DNA of 64,000 nt from sequence record PV231354.1. One strand, given 5' to 3'. The position numbers and the translations under genes were made by a program. This document shows, one piece after another, positions 1,759 through 26,095 of the stretch. The notes beneath the pieces were generated by a model. The model had not been told where the DNA came from. It did not search any database and was given only the letters and a program-made list of their open reading frames with translations. Within the stretch, counting starts at the first letter, position 1. Every line of letters begins with the position of its first letter.

Positions 1759-2216
1759 CTCAATTTCCCCTCGATCAACTTGAGGCCGGGCTGGTCCCGG
1801 TCCATCTGGTAGACGGTGTAGCGATCGCCGTCGAACTCGACGCTGTAGACCCGGATGCCGGCGTTGAGGCACTGCATCCACATGTCGCGCGTGCCCGGCC
1901 CGCCGGGAAACGCCACGCAGACGTCGGGCTGGCTGGTCTCACGCATGCGGGTGTTGCGCCGCTTGGGCGCATCGTCGCCCTCGCCGTCGAGCGCCGGGTC
2001 GACCTTGTAGACCTCGGTGGCGAACCCCCACTTCGCGGCCCAGGCGCGGCAGAGCCGGTCATAGCCCACCGCGTCGCCGTCGACCCAGATCATGTCGCGC
2101 GGCCAGCGCAGCGCCGAGACCAGGGCGGACAGCACAAGGGTGGGCGCGATCTCGACGACGCCGACCCGGCCGCCGCAGACCACCGCGACGAAAGGACGTT
2201 CAGCTTCAGGCGTCAT
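1755..2216 (-). CDS. SLOG/YspA-like (DUF2493-type) protein
   Basis: VVCGGR, GDAVGYD, RRNTRM, VAFPGGPGTRDM motifs. Confidence 0.8.
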   Translation of the reverse strand: MTPEAERPFVAVVCGGRVGVVEIAPTLVLSALVSALRWPRDMIWVDGDAVGYDRLCRAWAAKWGFATEVYKVDPALDGEGDDAPKRRNTRMRETSQPDVCVAFPGGPGTRDMWMQCLNAGIRVYSVEFDGDRYTVYQMDRDQPGLKLIEGKLR

Positions 2217-4119
2217 CGAAGATGTCCGGGTTGAGGATTTCGGGTTCCATGTCGATGAACGAGCCGTCGAGCTTACCCGAGCGCACGCCCGGCGTCGGTG
2301 CCTCATAGCGCGGGTTGAGCAGGTCCATCTCCAGGCGGTGGCGCTGGTATTCGTTATGCGAGTTGTACCTGTACTTGTTGTGGTACATCTTGGACGCGTG
2401 TTCCATGGTCTCCTCGGGCGGCGCGTAGCTGCGCCCCCGCCTGCCGCCGCCGTAGTCGTAGTGCGGGCTGCGGAAGTTGCCGCCGAACTCGCGGTCCGAC
2501 AACGCCGCCTGCTGCTGCAACCGGTCGCGGAACTTGCCGTAGCGCGCCGTCACGGCCGCGTGGTAGAGGCCCACGTCCGCCAGGAGCTTGATCAAGGGCT
2601 TGAACGACTTCTGCCCGTCGGAGAACTCCGTCACCGCGTCGACGAAGGCCTGGGCCGCCTTGACGGCCCTGGGCGAGCCGCCCAGCCAGGACAGAATTTG
2701 ACCGCCCTCGACGTCGTAGCAGGAGCCGTTGATCGCCCAGCCGCGCTCGGCCTCGTCCCAGGTCCACTGCGCGTTGTGCATCAGGGCCAGGACACCGAAC
2801 GGATCGTAGCGATCCTTGCCGTCGCGCAGGACCCCAAAGCCGAACTTGGTCTTGGCCATCAGCCCCGTCCATTCGGCCATGATGCCGGCATCCACCGACA
2901 TCTGCTGGAGCAGCTTCTGGAGGTAGCGCACGTTCGCCGGCACGTCGGTGCTGGTGCTGTCGCGCACGATCGTGCCTTGGAACGTCGTCCACGCCTCCAG
3001 GGTGCAGAACCGCTGGTGCAGCGGCTGGCGATCGTATTCCTGGCGCACGTTGTCAAGCTGCGCGAACTCGTCGAACGCGCCATAGCCGCCGTAACGGTCC
3101 CGGCGCCGATAGTACATGTCGCCGCCGACCTTCATGATCGGCATGTCGGCGTGGGCTTCGAAGATGTTGCCCAGGTCGTAGTAGCCGTCGTAGTCCCTGG
3201 TCTTTTCCAGTTCAGCGTCGGGGATCGCCCACAGGCCCGTCCACTCGCCGTCCGGACCCCAGAGGAAGAGGTTGGCCATCGGCCCCATCTCCTCCACCGT
3301 CGGGGTCCGCTCGGGCAGATAGGGCGCGAAGTGGTGGGCGTTCTTGTGGATGAACTCACGCACGTGGACTTCGTAGCGGTCGCTCGCGCGCCCGTGACGG
3401 CCATACATATCGTGATGGATCGAAGACATCTTGGTGTCCATGTACTTGAGGGGCGAGGCGGCCAGCCAGCGCATCATGTCTTTTTGATAGGGGCGCAGCG
3501 ACAGGGCTTGATGGTCACGCATGATCTCGGCGGCGGTCTTGCCCTGCGCCTTGTGGCTGGTGACGGGGAAGCCGTAGAGCTTGTCGACCATCTCCTTGAG
3601 CCGCGACTTGCCCGCCTGACGCGGGGCGACGTGTACCGTGCGGCAGAGGTTGTCGAACTTGGCGTCCAAGGGAGCAGGCCAGGGGGACGGCCAGGGCGCG
3701 TCGAACGCGGTGACGTCCTGCAACATGGCCGCCTCGTCGATGAGCCACGTGTTGTTCAGGGTGTCGTGCCCGAAGAACCGGTGAATCGTGCTGCCGGTCT
3801 TGCTGGCCGGGTCGATGCCGTAATGGACCTTGAACGGCCCCAGGGTGGCGTCCTCGATCTTGCGCTGCATCTCCTTGAGCCGCTCTTCGATCGACGGTAG
3901 GTCCGAGGCCTGCTCCAGGACCTTGATCTCCAGCGGGAACACGCTGTCCTTCCAATCGGGCTTGGCCTGGGTCGTCTTGGCGACCTTCAGCGTGTCCGCC
4001 AGCTTCTGGATCGACTTGGCCGCCTTGCCGGTCGGCGCCGGCACGAAGAAGCTGGAGGGCGCGGGCGGCTCCTTGAACAGGCTGAAGACGTCGGCCGGCG
4101 GGGCGCTGACCTGCTTCAT
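2206..4119 (-). CDS. Large hypothetical protein carrying isolated terminase/helicase-like motifs
   Basis: Long ORF in operon orientation; start moved to MKQVS, just after the DUF1643 stop; motifs listed under findings. Confidence 0.75.
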   Translation of the reverse strand: MKQVSAPPADVFSLFKEPPAPSSFFVPAPTGKAAKSIQKLADTLKVAKTTQAKPDWKDSVFPLEIKVLEQASDLPSIEERLKEMQRKIEDATLGPFKVHYGIDPASKTGSTIHRFFGHDTLNNTWLIDEAAMLQDVTAFDAPWPSPWPAPLDAKFDNLCRTVHVAPRQAGKSRLKEMVDKLYGFPVTSHKAQGKTAAEIMRDHQALSLRPYQKDMMRWLAASPLKYMDTKMSSIHHDMYGRHGRASDRYEVHVREFIHKNAHHFAPYLPERTPTVEEMGPMANLFLWGPDGEWTGLWAIPDAELEKTRDYDGYYDLGNIFEAHADMPIMKVGGDMYYRRRDRYGGYGAFDEFAQLDNVRQEYDRQPLHQRFCTLEAWTTFQGTIVRDSTSTDVPANVRYLQKLLQQMSVDAGIMAEWTGLMAKTKFGFGVLRDGKDRYDPFGVLALMHNAQWTWDEAERGWAINGSCYDVEGGQILSWLGGSPRAVKAAQAFVDAVTEFSDGQKSFKPLIKLLADVGLYHAAVTARYGKFRDRLQQQAALSDREFGGNFRSPHYDYGGGRRGRSYAPPEETMEHASKMYHNKYRYNSHNEYQRHRLEMDLLNPRYEAPTPGVRSGKLDGSFIDMEPEILNPDIFDDA

Positions 4120-4129
4120 CAGCGCCGCG

Positions 4130-4762
4130 CTAGGCGCCCCTAAGAGGCTCGAAAGGCTGCTCGCTGGGGATGTAGAGGGGGTGGCGAGGATGCCCGCCTT
4201 TGGACTTGCCGAGGCACTTGACTTCGACCCCGGTGATTTCGGCTTGCTGGACCGCGCCATAGTCTTGATCCTTGAACTCCCCATGGACACCCCAGCCGGC
4301 GATGACGTCGGCCTTGGCGGTGACAGCGTACTCGAAAGCGTGTTGCAGGAAACGGGCGTTGAGTGGCCCGATCGGGTCGGGCGCGGCCTTCATGATCGCG
4401 GGCGACTTTGACCGGAAGGCGAAGAGGTTGACCACGATGATCCCGCCGTAGTCGTCGCGGCGCGCAAAGCCCATGCAGCGCCGGATGGTGTTGTCGTCGA
4501 CTTGCGCGGTGGCGGTAGACGGATTGAGCATCATGAAGATCAGCAGCGGCTTGCTCGGGTCCCAGACCCGCATCAGCATGTAGCGGAAGGTCTCGCAGTC
4601 CGAGAGGATCGCGGCCTTGATCACGCCGTCCTCGATCACCACGTCGCCATAGACGCCGGTGATCTCCGGATCGTCGATCGACAGTTCGGCGGTCCCGTCC
4701 TCCAGGACCCGCAGGAAGTCGCCCCAGGAGGGCGCGCTCAGTTGTGCGGTGATCGTCGTCAT
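4130..4762 (-). CDS. DUF1643 family protein
   Basis: FRYMLMRVWD, MLNPSTA, DDNTIRRC, VVNLFAFR, AGWG, GHPRHPLY. Confidence 0.88.
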   Translation of the reverse strand: MTTITAQLSAPSWGDFLRVLEDGTAELSIDDPEITGVYGDVVIEDGVIKAAILSDCETFRYMLMRVWDPSKPLLIFMMLNPSTATAQVDDNTIRRCMGFARRDDYGGIIVVNLFAFRSKSPAIMKAAPDPIGPLNARFLQHAFEYAVTAKADVIAGWGVHGEFKDQDYGAVQQAEITGVEVKCLGKSKGGHPRHPLYIPSEQPFEPLRGA

Positions 4763-4768
4763 TCCTGA

Positions 4769-4798
4769 CATTTGCCCCGAGACGGCCGGCTTTGTCAA
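4769..4798 (-). promoter_or_regulatory. Possible sigma70-type promoter
   Basis: TTGACA at 4798-4793 just downstream of a terminator; -10 element is poor. Confidence 0.35.
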
Positions 4799-4810
4799 CG
4801 CTTGGAATCA

Positions 4811-4838
4811 AAAGGGCCGCCCCGCAGGACGGCCCTTT
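4811..4838 (-). terminator. Rho-independent terminator
   Basis: AAAGGGCCG-10 nt-CGGCCCTTT hairpin followed by a T run on the - strand. Confidence 0.8.
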
Positions 4839-4844
4839 CTCGAC

Positions 4845-5040
4845 CTTACCAGACTTCGCCGAGTATGCACGTCCGCCTGGACGTCGACCGCCTCGGAGTC
4901 TGGTCTTGTAGCGCCTCTAACGCTTGCCCCTCCGCACCCCGATCAAGGAAACCAGAAATCGGGTCGGATGGTCTAATGGGCGGCAGGTGATCGCTGGCGG
5001 TCTCTTCCGTGTAGGGCCTCCTACCACTTGCGGCTCTGTT
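4845..5040 (-). ncRNA. Candidate structured non-coding RNA
   Basis: ~200-nt gap in an otherwise gene-packed region; five stems, G-U pairs favouring the - strand, and long-range alternative pairings. Confidence 0.55.
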
Positions 5041-5319
5041 CTAGGATCGCGGCGCTACGTCGTCAACCTCAAGCAGGGCCTTTTGAGCCAGGGCGCGGTT
5101 GTACTCCAGGAGCTTGCGAAGAGCCTTGCGGTCTCCTTCAGCCATGGCGTAGAGCCGCACCACGTCGTCGAAGTCGAACTCGTTGACGAGGTCGCGTAGG
5201 TCCTGGTCCATCCTGTCGATGGTCCGAAACAGGCGCTCGCGGTACTGGCGGCGCTCACGCTGGCGGCGGCGGGCGACGAGGGTGCCGATCCGCTGCCGCA
5301 CGCGACGATGGCGCAGCAT
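5041..5319 (-). CDS. hypothetical protein with Arg-rich N-terminus
   Basis: Coupled to the upstream gene (TGATG); N-terminus RHRRVRQR...RRRQRERRQYRER. Confidence 0.7.
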   Translation of the reverse strand: MLRHRRVRQRIGTLVARRRQRERRQYRERLFRTIDRMDQDLRDLVNEFDFDDVVRLYAMAEGDRKALRKLLEYNRALAQKALLEVDDVAPRS

Positions 5320-5831
5320 CAGAGCGGCTTAGGCGCGTGCCAGTCCTCGCGGTCGTCGGCATAGAGCACCGACGCCAGCGGCCCGGTCCCGATGTCGCAC
5401 TTGGCGGCGATCCCCACCGCCTGGGCGGCCGTGGCGCCCATGTGAAGCGCTCCCAGGGCCGACCACGTACCCGAGCCGAAGGCGTAGAAGGGCGCGCGCA
5501 TCACATAGGCCGGCGCGCCGCTCTCGAACCGCAGGCAGGAGCCATCGGGGAGGATGACGTAACCGTTGGTCTCCTTGTCGGGCTTCTCGGGGCGGCCCAT
5601 GTCGCAGTACGGCCCCTTGCCGCCATCCGCCAGCCACTCATCGAACTTCTCGGACTTGACCCAGTCGAGGAAGATTTGGACGTAGGACGACTCGCCCGCC
5701 GCACCGAAGAGCAGCGTGCCGCCCGGCCCGGTGCGCTTGCCGATCTTGGGAACGTCCCCGCAGGGGGTCCACAGGTCCAGCACCCGCGCATCGGCGGCCA
5801 GGGCGCCGTCTCGATAGACGATACACGTCAT
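5319..5831 (-). CDS. HslV/proteasome-beta-like Ntn hydrolase
   Basis: N-terminal M-T-C-I, ALAADAR, K, LFGAAG, AFGSG, AVGIAAKCDIGT; GGAG RBS. Confidence 0.78.
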   Translation of the reverse strand: MTCIVYRDGALAADARVLDLWTPCGDVPKIGKRTGPGGTLLFGAAGESSYVQIFLDWVKSEKFDEWLADGGKGPYCDMGRPEKPDKETNGYVILPDGSCLRFESGAPAYVMRAPFYAFGSGTWSALGALHMGATAAQAVGIAAKCDIGTGPLASVLYADDREDWHAPKPL

Positions 5832-5862
5832 ACGTCCAAACTCCTACTGATGTCTTCTAGGT

Positions 5863-6552
5863 TTAGCGCGGTGCGCGCGGCAGGCGGGCGGCGGCCGGGT
5901 TCTTCAGCGAGCCGGTGGTCGGCCCGGCTTGGCGAGCGCCGGCCTTGGGGTTGAAGCCCTCGGGCAGGAGCGGCGTGCGGGACTTGCCCGAAGCGGCGGC
6001 GCGCTCCTTGACGAGGTCGTCACCCCCTTCGCTCTGGACCTTGGCGTCGGAGACCAGCTTGTCGCGGCGCTTGGAGGGCGCGACGTTGTTGGACTGGACG
6101 GTGCCGTCCGAGCCGGCCGCGATCTGGCGCGTCGTCAGGTCGACGACCGCGTTGACCAGCGCCGACAGCATCGCCTTTTCGGCGCTGACCGAGGCTGCGG
6201 TCGAGGCGCCCGTGAACCCGGTCTCCTCACCCTTCGCCTTGCCGCTGACGCGCACGGTGATCTGCTTGGTCTTCTTGTTCTTCAGGAAGCCCGAGACCTC
6301 TTCGCGCGTCGAGACGTCGACCCGCGCGCCCGGCGCGATGTGCTCCAGCAGCGCCAGGGCGGCGTGATAGCTGCTGGTGAAATTGAGCGCGCCCTTGTAG
6401 CCGCTCGGGACGGCGATGGTCTTCTCGATCGTTTGATCGATGACCGTCGTGGCCAGATAGGTGGGCTCAGGATCGCGCAGGTAGGTGTCGACCTGCTCCT
6501 TCACGGCCCGCAGGCGGTTGATGTCGATTGAAAGGGCGCGGGTGGCGACCAT
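5863..6552 (-). CDS. hypothetical protein
   Basis: Start moved to MVATRAL (GGAG RBS). Confidence 0.7.
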   Translation of the reverse strand: MVATRALSIDINRLRAVKEQVDTYLRDPEPTYLATTVIDQTIEKTIAVPSGYKGALNFTSSYHAALALLEHIAPGARVDVSTREEVSGFLKNKKTKQITVRVSGKAKGEETGFTGASTAASVSAEKAMLSALVNAVVDLTTRQIAAGSDGTVQSNNVAPSKRRDKLVSDAKVQSEGGDDLVKERAAASGKSRTPLLPEGFNPKAGARQAGPTTGSLKNPAAARLPRAPR

Positions 6553-24691: not shown

Positions 24692-26095
24692 CTTTACGCC
24701 GACCGAGGCTGCGACCTTGGCGAGGGTCTCGCGCTGGGCCTTGATGCGCTTGTCGAAGGCGTCGAGCGACGCCATCATGTCGCTCTCCAGCTTGTCCAGC
24801 GCCGCCCACTGCTCGACGACCGCCTTGGCGGCCTTGTCCTGGGCCTCGTTGCGTTCCGGGCCGTAGACCCGCTCGCGCAGTTCGGCGATCCAGGCGCGCG
24901 GCAGGCCCAGTTCCTTGGAGACCTTCTCGTCGGTCATGTCGCCGCCATAGCACTGGCGGTTGGTGTCGTAGTGAGTGTCCAGGGCTTCGAGGATGCGGCG
25001 GTTCTCGGCCGGCGTCGCCGCGCGCGGCGGCTCGGCGGACTGGGGCAGGGTCTTGGCGGCGGCTGGGGGCATGGCGATCTCCGGAATAGGGGTTTCGATA
25101 TGGGTTTCGATGGTGGTCGGATTGTTCTTCTTGGCCAACCGCGTCTTGGCGGCGGCCTTCTGGCGCTCGGAGCGTTCTTCCTGGGTCATGGCGGCCCAGT
25201 AGGCGCGCGGCCCGCGCCCCTTCTTTTCACGCTGCTCGGCGATCTTGGCTTCCTTCTTGGCCTTGCGCGTGGCGTGGCCCTTCTTGGAGAGTTCCGACCG
25301 CTGCTCGGGCGTCAGGGATTCGTGGTGGGCACGCAGATGCGCCCCATCGAAGAGCTTGCGCCGATCGACCTTGGCGTCGACGCCTTGTTCCTTGCTCACG
25401 GTGGCGTAGGCCTCCTCGAAAATGGGATTGAGGAACTTGTCGGACGCGTAGTGGACGATCTCCTCGGGCAGCACGTCATCCTGGGTGCTCAGTTCCTGGA
25501 TCACCCTGCGGATCGACGCCAGGAGAGGGGCCGTGGGCGCCTCAAGTCCGCACTCGCGGAAGAACTTGCCAGCGTAATTCGTGAGAACGGCCTTGATCCG
25601 CTGCTCGCGCGGGTAGCCGCCCGTCGTCTTGCGGATGGCGCCCCGGACGATCCTGTCGGCCGTGTCGGGGTCGATCTCCGCCACGGTGGCCAGCATCTTG
25701 CCCACGGCCTCGTCTTCGAGGACGAAGTCCCCCGCCTCGCGCGGGTCGATCATCTCGATCGGCTTGATCGCGTTGGACACGACCTGGATCGCCGTGTCGA
25801 TGGCGATGTCGTCGCGGTCGGCGACCGGGGCGGAGTCCTGCTTGGCGCGGCCGTGGCAGGACGGGCAGGTGTCCTTGTTGCGGTTGGCGCCGACGGCCCA
25901 GCCCCGCTTACGGAATATCTTCGAGGCCAGTTCCGCCGGGATGTGCGGGCTGCGCGTCGTCACCGGGACGGCGTCATCGCGGTCGCACTTGCGGCAGACG
26001 GCCACGACGTGGTTCTGGCGCTTGTTAGGGTCGGTGGCCAGGGGCCGCATCTCGACCCGGAACGACTCGCGCGTGGCAAGTTTGGTCGTGCTCAT
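24683..26095 (-). CDS. Zn-ribbon-containing hypothetical protein
   Basis: CRKC...CPSC, basic helical middle region, C-terminal coiled coil; start MSTTK. Confidence 0.72.
   Translation of the reverse strand: MSTTKLATRESFRVEMRPLATDPNKRQNHVVAVCRKCDRDDAVPVTTRSPHIPAELASKIFRKRGWAVGANRNKDTCPSCHGRAKQDSAPVADRDDIAIDTAIQVVSNAIKPIEMIDPREAGDFVLEDEAVGKMLATVAEIDPDTADRIVRGAIRKTTGGYPREQRIKAVLTNYAGKFFRECGLEAPTAPLLASIRRVIQELSTQDDVLPEEIVHYASDKFLNPIFEEAYATVSKEQGVDAKVDRRKLFDGAHLRAHHESLTPEQRSELSKKGHATRKAKKEAKIAEQREKKGRGPRAYWAAMTQEERSERQKAAAKTRLAKKNNPTTIETHIETPIPEIAMPPAAAKTLPQSAEPPRAATPAENRRILEALDTHYDTNRQCYGGDMTDEKVSKELGLPRAWIAELRERVYGPERNEAQDKAAKAVVEQWAALDKLESDMMASLDAFDKRIKAQRETLAKVAASVGVKLA

Follow-up and report, generated by a model that had tools for sequence, protein, structure and literature searches.

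RNAs with complex folds and dozens of invariant bases have mostly proved to be ribozymes, riboswitches or the cores of ribonucleoprotein machines. The closest described systems for the element analysed here are the ROOL, GOLLD and raiA-type orphan RNAs, the hepatitis delta virus (HDV)-like and glmS ribozymes, and the processive antitermination RNAs put of HK022 and EAR of Bacillus. EAR contains a pseudoknot; put consists of two simple stem-loops and, to our knowledge, is known only in HK022-like phages. We analysed a stretch of 64,000 nucleotides (nt) from sequence record PV231354.1 (the window), in which a 278-nt gap lies between a gene for a hypothetical protein of 92 amino acids (aa; 5041-5319) and a DUF1643 gene (4130-4762), all genes around it being on the minus strand. 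Over 2 kb around the gap, identity is 100% with CcrRogue, a Caulobacter phage of the genus Poindextervirus, and 77% with the phiCbK-like phages of Shapirovirus. The gap houses an element that comparative evidence supports as a non-coding structured phage RNA of the minus strand, with a family core at 5002-4840. Covariation supports a fold in which P1 closes the structure, the short hairpin P2 carries a GG bulge, P3a-bulge-P3b make up a long arm, and a pseudoknot helix PK-A joins the 5' tail to the first part of the P3 loop and stacks on P3b. The CcrRogue element is a diverged member of a large phage RNA family, with an inserted hairpin.

Like the ROOL, GOLLD and raiA-type RNAs, this RNA was found in phages and metagenomes by comparative genomics, shows covariation and many invariant bases, and has neither a conserved protein partner nor a fixed downstream gene; one of its lineages lies near transfer RNA (tRNA) genes. 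It is, however, much smaller (~145-220 nt) and of another architecture, the Rfam models of those RNAs do not match it, and there is no evidence of multimers here; PK-A could in principle form between molecules. With the HDV-like and glmS ribozymes it shares two crossing helices (5' strand to an internal segment, second strand to the 3' end), a compact core and an intergenic place in phage transcripts. The crossing topology is similar to that of the HDV-like ribozymes, but our RNA has an extra closing arm, P3, around the pseudoknot partner and far higher sequence conservation, no P1.1 or catalytic C was identified in it, and no HDV-type model in Rfam matched. As with put and EAR, we have here a co-directional folded RNA that stands ahead of an intrinsic terminator and lacks a dedicated protein close by, in this case carried by phages; but its fold differs from the two stem-loops of put, the Rfam EAR model is unmatched, and the surroundings of several members, such as those that face convergent tRNA genes, do not suit antitermination. 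The bulge in P3 has three bases and begins with a pyrimidine that covaries with a nearby purine in the way that isosteric triples would require, recalling the bulge of the HIV-1 (human immunodeficiency virus type 1) TAR type; this is a likeness of a local motif only, the RNAs being otherwise unrelated and the triple a predicted one in our case. Phage non-coding RNAs (ncRNAs) associated with UG27 reverse transcriptases consist of ~150-nt units with a basal stem and a pseudoknot, which stand in tandem arrays beside the gene for a reverse transcriptase and a pair of accessory genes, for the most part in phages of the gut, and show little conservation of primary sequence (bioRxiv 10.64898/2026.09.22.753630). 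The present element differs in being single-copy with ~40 invariant bases, and no reverse-transcriptase domain was detected among the scanned proteins of neighbouring genes in a subset of loci.

An initial annotation of the stretch, made from the letters alone, had described a multi-hairpin RNA of the minus strand at this site, and all stems listed there are present. The stems 5011-5015/5020-5024 (GUAGG/CCUAC) and 4869-4874/4879-4884 (ACGUCC/GGACGU) both carry an AGGC loop, and 4932-4943/4958-4967 form an imperfect long hairpin. The segments 4910-4915/4919-4924 make four Watson-Crick pairs together with U.G pairs, which exist on the minus strand only; 4848-4855/4897-4904 give 8 base pairs (bp) and 4859-4863/4892-4896 give 4-5 bp. 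A perfect 7-bp match between GACCGCC (5002-4996) and GGCGGUC (4892-4886) had been noted as a long-range alternative and turned out to be a genuine pseudoknot, kept by compensatory change. The idea of mutually exclusive pairings did not hold: the conserved pairings are topologically compatible and can coexist as two predicted interleaved H-type pseudoknots, formed by PK-A with P3 and by a helix S1 with P1, the S1 part being partly supported. CcrRogue could also form a further alternative, in which 4899-4904 pair with the loop at 4951-4956; it is unconserved because the phiCbK lineage lacks the partner sequence and all other family members lack the entire hairpin 4932-4967. Coordinates of all features are given in Table 1.

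Table 1. Features of the element and its surroundings, in window coordinates unless a locus is named; elements of the fold are listed first, in transcript order.
Feature	Position	Strand	Remarks
5' hairpin GUAGG-AGGC-CCUAC	5011..5024	-	lineage-specific, outside the family core
PK-A 5' strand GACCGCC	4996..5002	-	pairs with 4886-4892
Conserved box CCUGCCGCCC (family consensus CCUGCANCCG)	4978..4987	-	near-invariant, 87 sequences
Helix S1 5' strand, UGC + CCC	4985-4983 + 4980-4978	-	within the conserved box
P1 5' strand (UA)GACC	4970..4975	-	pairs with 4840-4845
Inserted hairpin P1a	4932..4967	-	in J1/2; Caulobacter phages only; CUCC/UCCU-type motif in the loop
Helix S1 3' strand GGGGCA	4925..4930	-	RNAalifold and pairing counts
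P2 hairpin AGCG/CGCU with U-A pair and conserved GG bulge	4910..4924	-	covaries in second-anchor loci
Junction ACAAG	4905..4909	-	invariant
P3a 5' strand ACCAGACU; P3b 5' strand CCGA	4904-4897; 4896-4893	-	pair with 4848-4855 and 4859-4862
PK-A 3' strand GGCGGUC	4886..4892	-	begins immediately after P3b
Hairpin ACGUCC-AGGC-GGACGU	4869..4884	-	in loop L3, variable region
P3b 3' strand UCGG; P3a 3' strand AGUCUGGU	4862-4859; 4855-4848	-	CGA bulge between the two
Three-base bulge CGA in P3	4856..4858	-	base covariation in the family
Junction AA; P1 3' strand GGUCGA	4847-4846; 4845-4840	-	pairing counts
Putative -35 element TTGACG	5061..5066	-	invariant in four Caulobacter phage lineages, spacer differing in each
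Putative -10 element TAGAAC	5038..5043	-	TAAGCT or TAAGGT in other lineages
Predicted primary transcript, ~220 nt	4808..5031	-	from the putative promoter to the U tract of the terminator; both ends predicted
Intrinsic terminator	4810..4838	-	12-bp GC-rich stem, UGCG loop, UUUU(GAUU) tail
TTGACA-N17-GCAAAT block	4770..4798	-	adjoins the RNA, not part of it; conserved ends, variable spacer
HslV-like peptidase gene	5319-5831	-	two genes upstream of the RNA
Protein gene annotated over the element, phiCbK gp263	L004:1152-1355		same place in L003, L007, L008, L009, L010

Folding energy alone is weak evidence for an RNA here (z-score -2.3 for the minus and -2.2 for the plus strand); comparison at the sequence level is what establishes the element as real. 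Related phages show both the covariation and the conservation that the initial annotation had asked for. We compared ten Caulobacter phage sequences from four lineages (CcrRogue, CcrBL10, the phiCbK group and BL57). The proposed pairs, pseudoknots included, hold in 430 of 430 cells, with compensatory changes at eight pairs; six pairs of P3a/P3b covary among these phages. Between lineages P3a changes from ACCAGACU/AGUCUGGU to GUCGAACU/AGUUCGAC and P3b from CCGA/UCGG to CCAU/AUGG. P1 is GACC/GGUC in CcrRogue and GAUC/GAUC in the phiCbK lineage, and PK-A changes from GACCGCC/GGCGGUC to GACCACC/GGUGGUC in BL57.

The family extends far beyond the Caulobacter phages. A search of IMG/VR with its most conserved block, GGCAAGCG-N7-CGCTACAAG, as the first anchor returned 43 contigs, 31 of which are similar well beyond the pattern. 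With a longer pattern, soil, rhizosphere and freshwater lakes yielded 117 loci in metagenomes, almost all of which are true members, and the first-anchor members form 87 clusters at 95% identity. With a second, independent anchor (the conserved box and J1/2) 30 further viral loci were found, which have a different P2. The covariance model R1, which was built from 20 uncultured viral sequences and includes no Caulobacter phage, gave exactly one match in each of 87 sources. Its single match in the 64-kb window lies at 4829-4977 on the minus strand (48.1 bits, E = 6e-11) and covers the full model length. CcrRogue carries all invariant blocks, that is the CCUGCANCCG box, GGCAAG, ACAAG, the GUUC/YGAAR bulge region and the junction AA; its deviations from the family are an A to C change at box position 6, the C-type variant of the bulge and the extra hairpin 4932-4967.

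An alignment of 87 family sequences, fitted to the model, has 97.5% of the cells in the nested helices paired and double changes at 17 of the 23 pairs. Its covariation was scored at 0.515, compared with 0.157 for shuffles and at most 0.078 for partner-slid controls; all six pairs of P1, seven of eight in P3a and three of four in P3b covary. The second-anchor set showed double changes in 20 of the 23 pairs. Ranked by mutual information, the top eleven column pairs are all predicted pairs, and RNAalifold applied to a plain, unfitted MAFFT alignment predicts P2, P3a, P3b and S1 unaided. P2 is invariant in the first set because it belonged to the search pattern; in the second-anchor loci it covaries (AGCG/CGCU, AGUG/CACU, AGGA/UCCU) and can bear long insertions above the conserved GG bulge. 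The junction ACAAG was also a component of the first pattern, yet 28 of 30 second-anchor loci retain it. The strand is fixed as minus by the frequent G.U pairs, and the ~40 invariant bases of the family cluster at the junctions.

For PK-A, nearly every member pairs its 5' tail with the first bases of the P3 loop, and 66 different partner sequences occur; in ~70 relatives the complementary strands are altogether different in sequence. The median contiguous run is nine pairs with the own partner versus five with the partner of another sequence, and the mean duplex energies are -24.2 versus -15.9 kcal/mol. S1, in which UGC..CCG of the box pairs with CG.GGCA, is paired in 96.5% of cells and has one covarying pair (C-G 69 times, G-C eight times); the change from CCG/CGG in the family to CCC/GGG in the Caulobacter phages is a second compensation, seen by eye. 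In the P3 bulge the first base and the purine of the pair two steps away are U/A in 61 members and C/G in 14, with three exceptions, from which we infer a U.A-U or C+.G-C base triple.

Three hairpins of the CcrRogue RNA vary between relatives. The 5' hairpin at 5011-5024 occurs in CcrRogue and CcrBL10, a different hairpin is found in phiCbK and none is obvious in BL57. At the L3 position of hairpin 4869-4884, other members have other hairpins or none. P1a differs in sequence among the four Caulobacter phage lineages, its arms being complementary by eye in each; its pairs were left out of the formal counts because the alignment is poor there, and the hairpin is absent from all short-form relatives. 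Its loop (4944-4957) is pyrimidine-rich and contains UCC (as CUCC or UUCC) in all four lineages, with equivalent loops in loci L002, L004 and L005. The UCC resembles an anti-Shine-Dalgarno seed and could have an additional base-pairing function in the Caulobacter phage clade.

No catalogued RNA family matches the element. At gathering thresholds Rfam 15 (4227 models) gave no match in the window, and none of 20 related loci yielded a family for the element: 12 of them had no match at all and seven more had matches to tRNAs only. With E values up to 10, only the terminator hairpin of the window element was matched, by the terminator portions of small-RNA models, and at the related loci only unrelated flanks. 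ARAGORN detected neither tRNA nor transfer-messenger RNA (tmRNA) in the gap or at the element in 24 related loci. These searches agree with the initial annotation, which had been unable to assign the RNA to tRNA, tmRNA or several other known classes; a permuted alphaproteobacterial tmRNA was also considered and ruled out by ARAGORN. The phi29 pRNA was excluded by the different phage type and the lack of a model match. Local resemblances were dropped as chance for 9-mers of the 16S rRNA 530 loop, 6-mers of the 23S L11-binding region and the sarcin-ricin loop; a kink-turn was dropped for its lack of tandem G.A pairs and a T-loop for the wrong base at position 58.

Among 185,579 bacterial and archaeal genomes the core pattern had 24 matches, all of them coding (mostly for the peptide GKRLRRYK) and without the motif flanks. 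A blastn search of 50,697 cultured phage records with four family members found the element solely in phiCbK-like phages; matches in a mycobacteriophage integrase and in Arthrobacter and Klebsiella phages were short chance matches inside genes and were rejected. A full-text literature search with the core sequence returned only unrelated primers, and keyword searches returned no description. Having no Rfam match and no description in the searchable literature, the element is treated here as a member of a new, previously uncatalogued RNA family, of which phiCbK-like phages are the only cultured carriers found. The initial annotation had suspected an undescribed structured phage ncRNA, which agrees with the covariation within the family and its absence from catalogues. 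The family has more than 100 distinct members in soil and freshwater phages and no entry in Rfam 15; viral and metagenome contigs from these habitats supplied ~110 distinct relatives. The ~8,500 unnamed viral RNA candidates predicted by Fremin et al. (2023) may include it.

In the Caulobacter phages the element seems to be a transcription unit. The retention of the -35 and -10 blocks around a spacer of variable sequence, 17 nt long in all Caulobacter phage lineages, suggests that it has its own housekeeping-type promoter, with a start near 5031. The consensus -35 of Caulobacter housekeeping promoters is TTGACGS, which the -35 block fits. The TAG stop codon of the 92-aa gene (5043-5041) sits within the putative -10 element; in phiCbK the stop codon of another upstream gene, gp262, sits within the -35 element. 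The terminator predicted directly after the RNA in the initial annotation is there, as a GC-rich hairpin with a U tract (4838-4810). Its stem is paired in ten of ten Caulobacter phage sequences and is followed by UUUUGAUU, and the CcrSwift record has a rho-independent terminator annotated at the equivalent site. Next to the RNA, the TTGACA-N17-GCAAAT block ends 7 nt before the ATG (4762) of the DUF1643 gene and is possibly a second promoter giving a leaderless DUF1643 mRNA, although its -10 fits the Caulobacter consensus poorly. Elsewhere in the family, a TATGYAAAT motif recurs 10-20 nt upstream of the PK-A 5' strand in one group of freshwater phages (L195, L196, L201, L209, L214, L223, L037, L119 and L207), and locus L203 has a canonical TTGCAA-N16-TGTATAAT in its place. 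Either motif may be a promoter from which transcription begins at the element.

In the relatives the element always has the direction of the upstream gene, and as a rule it starts within a few bases of the stop codon of that gene. The neighbouring genes are diverse and include DNA polymerase A, Pol III alpha, primase, thymidylate synthase and a PD-(D/E)XK nuclease; in some phages the gene for the small terminase subunit is downstream. The proteins encoded on either side of 87 representatives sort into 111 unrelated groups, and no partner gene was found to be conserved next to the element or within ~7 kb of it. The largest lineage has a terminator after the element and, beyond it, tRNA genes in convergent orientation, and hence no downstream gene to regulate.

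We assign a probability of roughly 60% to the reading that the gap is a gene for a self-contained ncRNA which acts through its invariant folded core on a partner conserved across hosts. The RNA would be transcribed from the minus strand from the promoter at 5066-5061 (-35) and 5043-5038 (-10), starting near 5031, and would stop at the terminator 4838-4810 after ~220 nt. The transcript would fold into the double-pseudoknot core, with S1 and the base triple as partly supported additions, and would present an unchanging pocket or surface to its partner, be it a protein, an RNA or a small molecule. A self-contained folded molecule is the most likely form because the ~40 invariant bases cluster at junctions. 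The element does not appear to be a switch or a regulator of a neighbouring gene, and nothing points to control of DUF1643. It is possible, though we hold this only tentatively, that the family is a new catalytic or ligand-binding RNA class carried as a free-standing gene. It could then be a self-cleaving ribozyme with HDV-like crossing topology, or an aptamer without expression platform that sequesters a small molecule, for instance a nucleotide used as a signal in host defence. In either case the ~40 invariant junction bases, the two pseudoknots and the putative triple would make up the active site or pocket. Caulobacter crescentus is among the best-developed bacterial genetic models; with its genetics and the phiCbK-like carriers, the function of the whole family is directly testable.

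Six phiCbK-like genomes (phiCbK, CcrSwift, Magneto, Karma, Ccr10 and Ccr5) have the element annotated as a hypothetical protein of 67-72 aa, so that a small protein of the phiCbK gp263 family (67 aa) has to be considered as its product. The phiCbK lineage does have an ATG, provided with a good GGAGG Shine-Dalgarno sequence, that opens a 67-codon frame over the element. CcrRogue, CcrBL10 and BL57, however, lack the start codon, and a 1-nt indel and a stop break the frame. The annotated open reading frame (ORF) extends through the terminator hairpin, and substitutions compensate in helices instead of falling on third codon positions. Nor is any frame maintained in the family: element lengths are evenly spread modulo 3, each of the three sense frames contains a stop in 37 of 76 members, and the others have no frame in common. 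A protein product is therefore improbable in the extreme. As the annotated ORF runs through the terminator and has no counterpart frame in CcrRogue, CcrBL10 and BL57, the hypothetical protein in the six genomes is probably a mis-annotation of an RNA gene, which corrects these records.

A role for the RNA on its own transcript has been weighed in three forms. The initial annotation had proposed a switch, attenuator or antiterminator. A riboswitch or attenuator controlling the DUF1643 gene by alternative pairings would suit a conserved, aptamer-like core followed by a terminator or a ribosome-binding site depending on the member, as in many riboswitch classes, and some alternative pairings can be drawn in CcrRogue. 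We nevertheless consider it very unlikely, given that the genes downstream are unrelated among members (the 111 groups above), differ in almost every relative and are lacking in one lineage, that the conserved pairings coexist as pseudoknots, that the sole truly exclusive alternative (4899-4904 with 4951-4956) is unconserved, and that the terminator is separated from the DUF1643 gene by the promoter-like block. By eye we found no conserved alternative pairing with the terminator or with the Shine-Dalgarno sequence, a point on which no systematic search was made. A cis-acting antitermination RNA of the put or EAR kind would modify the polymerase so that it reads through 4838-4810 and later terminators. 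The CcrRogue order of predicted promoter, element, strong terminator and long co-directional gene run fits such an RNA, and a universal target such as RNA polymerase would suit diverse hosts and the lack of a retained phage protein partner. Against this, read-through in the largest lineage would run into the convergent tRNA genes and yield antisense RNA, some members lie between genes of the opposite strand, there is one copy per locus, and fold and EAR model disagree as described. Antitermination thus seems unlikely, slightly more so than another doubtful candidate, a self-cleaving ribozyme of a new class whose cuts would fall between the genes of polycistronic phage transcripts. The context is typical of such processing ribozymes in phages: single co-directional copies with no conserved neighbour, placed after a stop codon and ahead of the following ribosome-binding site or terminator. 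The compact core with its ~40 invariant junction bases and two interleaved pseudoknots would fit as well, and its crossing order is apparently that of P1 and P2 in HDV-like ribozymes. No ribozyme model of Rfam matched even at E = 10, however, the base analogous to the catalytic C of HDV is U in 61 of 78 members, and for a lone ribozyme the putative promoter and the terminator in the Caulobacter phages would have no evident purpose.

Several observations weigh against the preferred reading, an independent ncRNA gene. Promoter, start site and length of the RNA are all predicted from sequence, and a scan of the window for E. coli-type promoters and terminators called neither the promoter nor the terminator of the element; the terminator was missed because the stem extension of this simple scan consumes the U tract. 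A strict sigma-70 scan upstream of relatives found promoters in 3 of 93, compared with 1.7 expected from shuffled sequence, so a general sigma-70 promoter across the family was rejected. Co-transcription of the element with the gene upstream is therefore probable in most relatives, and processing would be needed to obtain a free RNA. A terminator directly after P1 in ~14 of 78 clusters, which would also suit antitermination, and a ribosome-binding site and start codon 15-35 nt downstream in ~20 of them are layouts that fit a cis-acting leader or a processing element too. As to the fold, two of the alignments (A4 and A6) had been fitted to the model, so that their percentages of paired cells are inflated, and S1 is partly supported, by one counted covarying pair and one seen by eye.

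Some loci of the wider family have further features. In one member with convergent tRNA genes (Pro, Tyr), ~270 nt without a credible ORF lie between the terminator of the element and these genes (L028:4700-4970); the region includes a T-arm-like GGGTTCAACCCC and received no call by ARAGORN or Rfam. A few soil contigs look cellular, with genes for a major facilitator superfamily transporter, Usp, sulfatase, integrase and transposase, and some copies there are truncated. Truncated or decayed copies without the P3 3' half and P1 were found at L085/L090 (~5774-5870), L086:671-785, L088:427-546 and L141:584-745, in soil contigs with cellular-type genes (sulfatase, spermidine synthase); related full-length copies lie near an integrase (L079) or a transposase (L169).

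Upstream of the RNA in the window, the gene for the HslV-family (proteasome-like) peptidase is kept in all phiCbK-like phages. On the other side of the gap, two very long ORFs overlap on opposite strands, 2092-3900 on the plus strand (602 aa) and 2206-4290 on the minus strand (694 aa). An annotated minus-strand gene of ~638 codons shares its end coordinate with the latter and is shorter; the plus-strand ORF is the usual shadow frame of GC-rich DNA. Over the whole window, the sole call by ARAGORN is a tRNA-Ala at 25597-25670.

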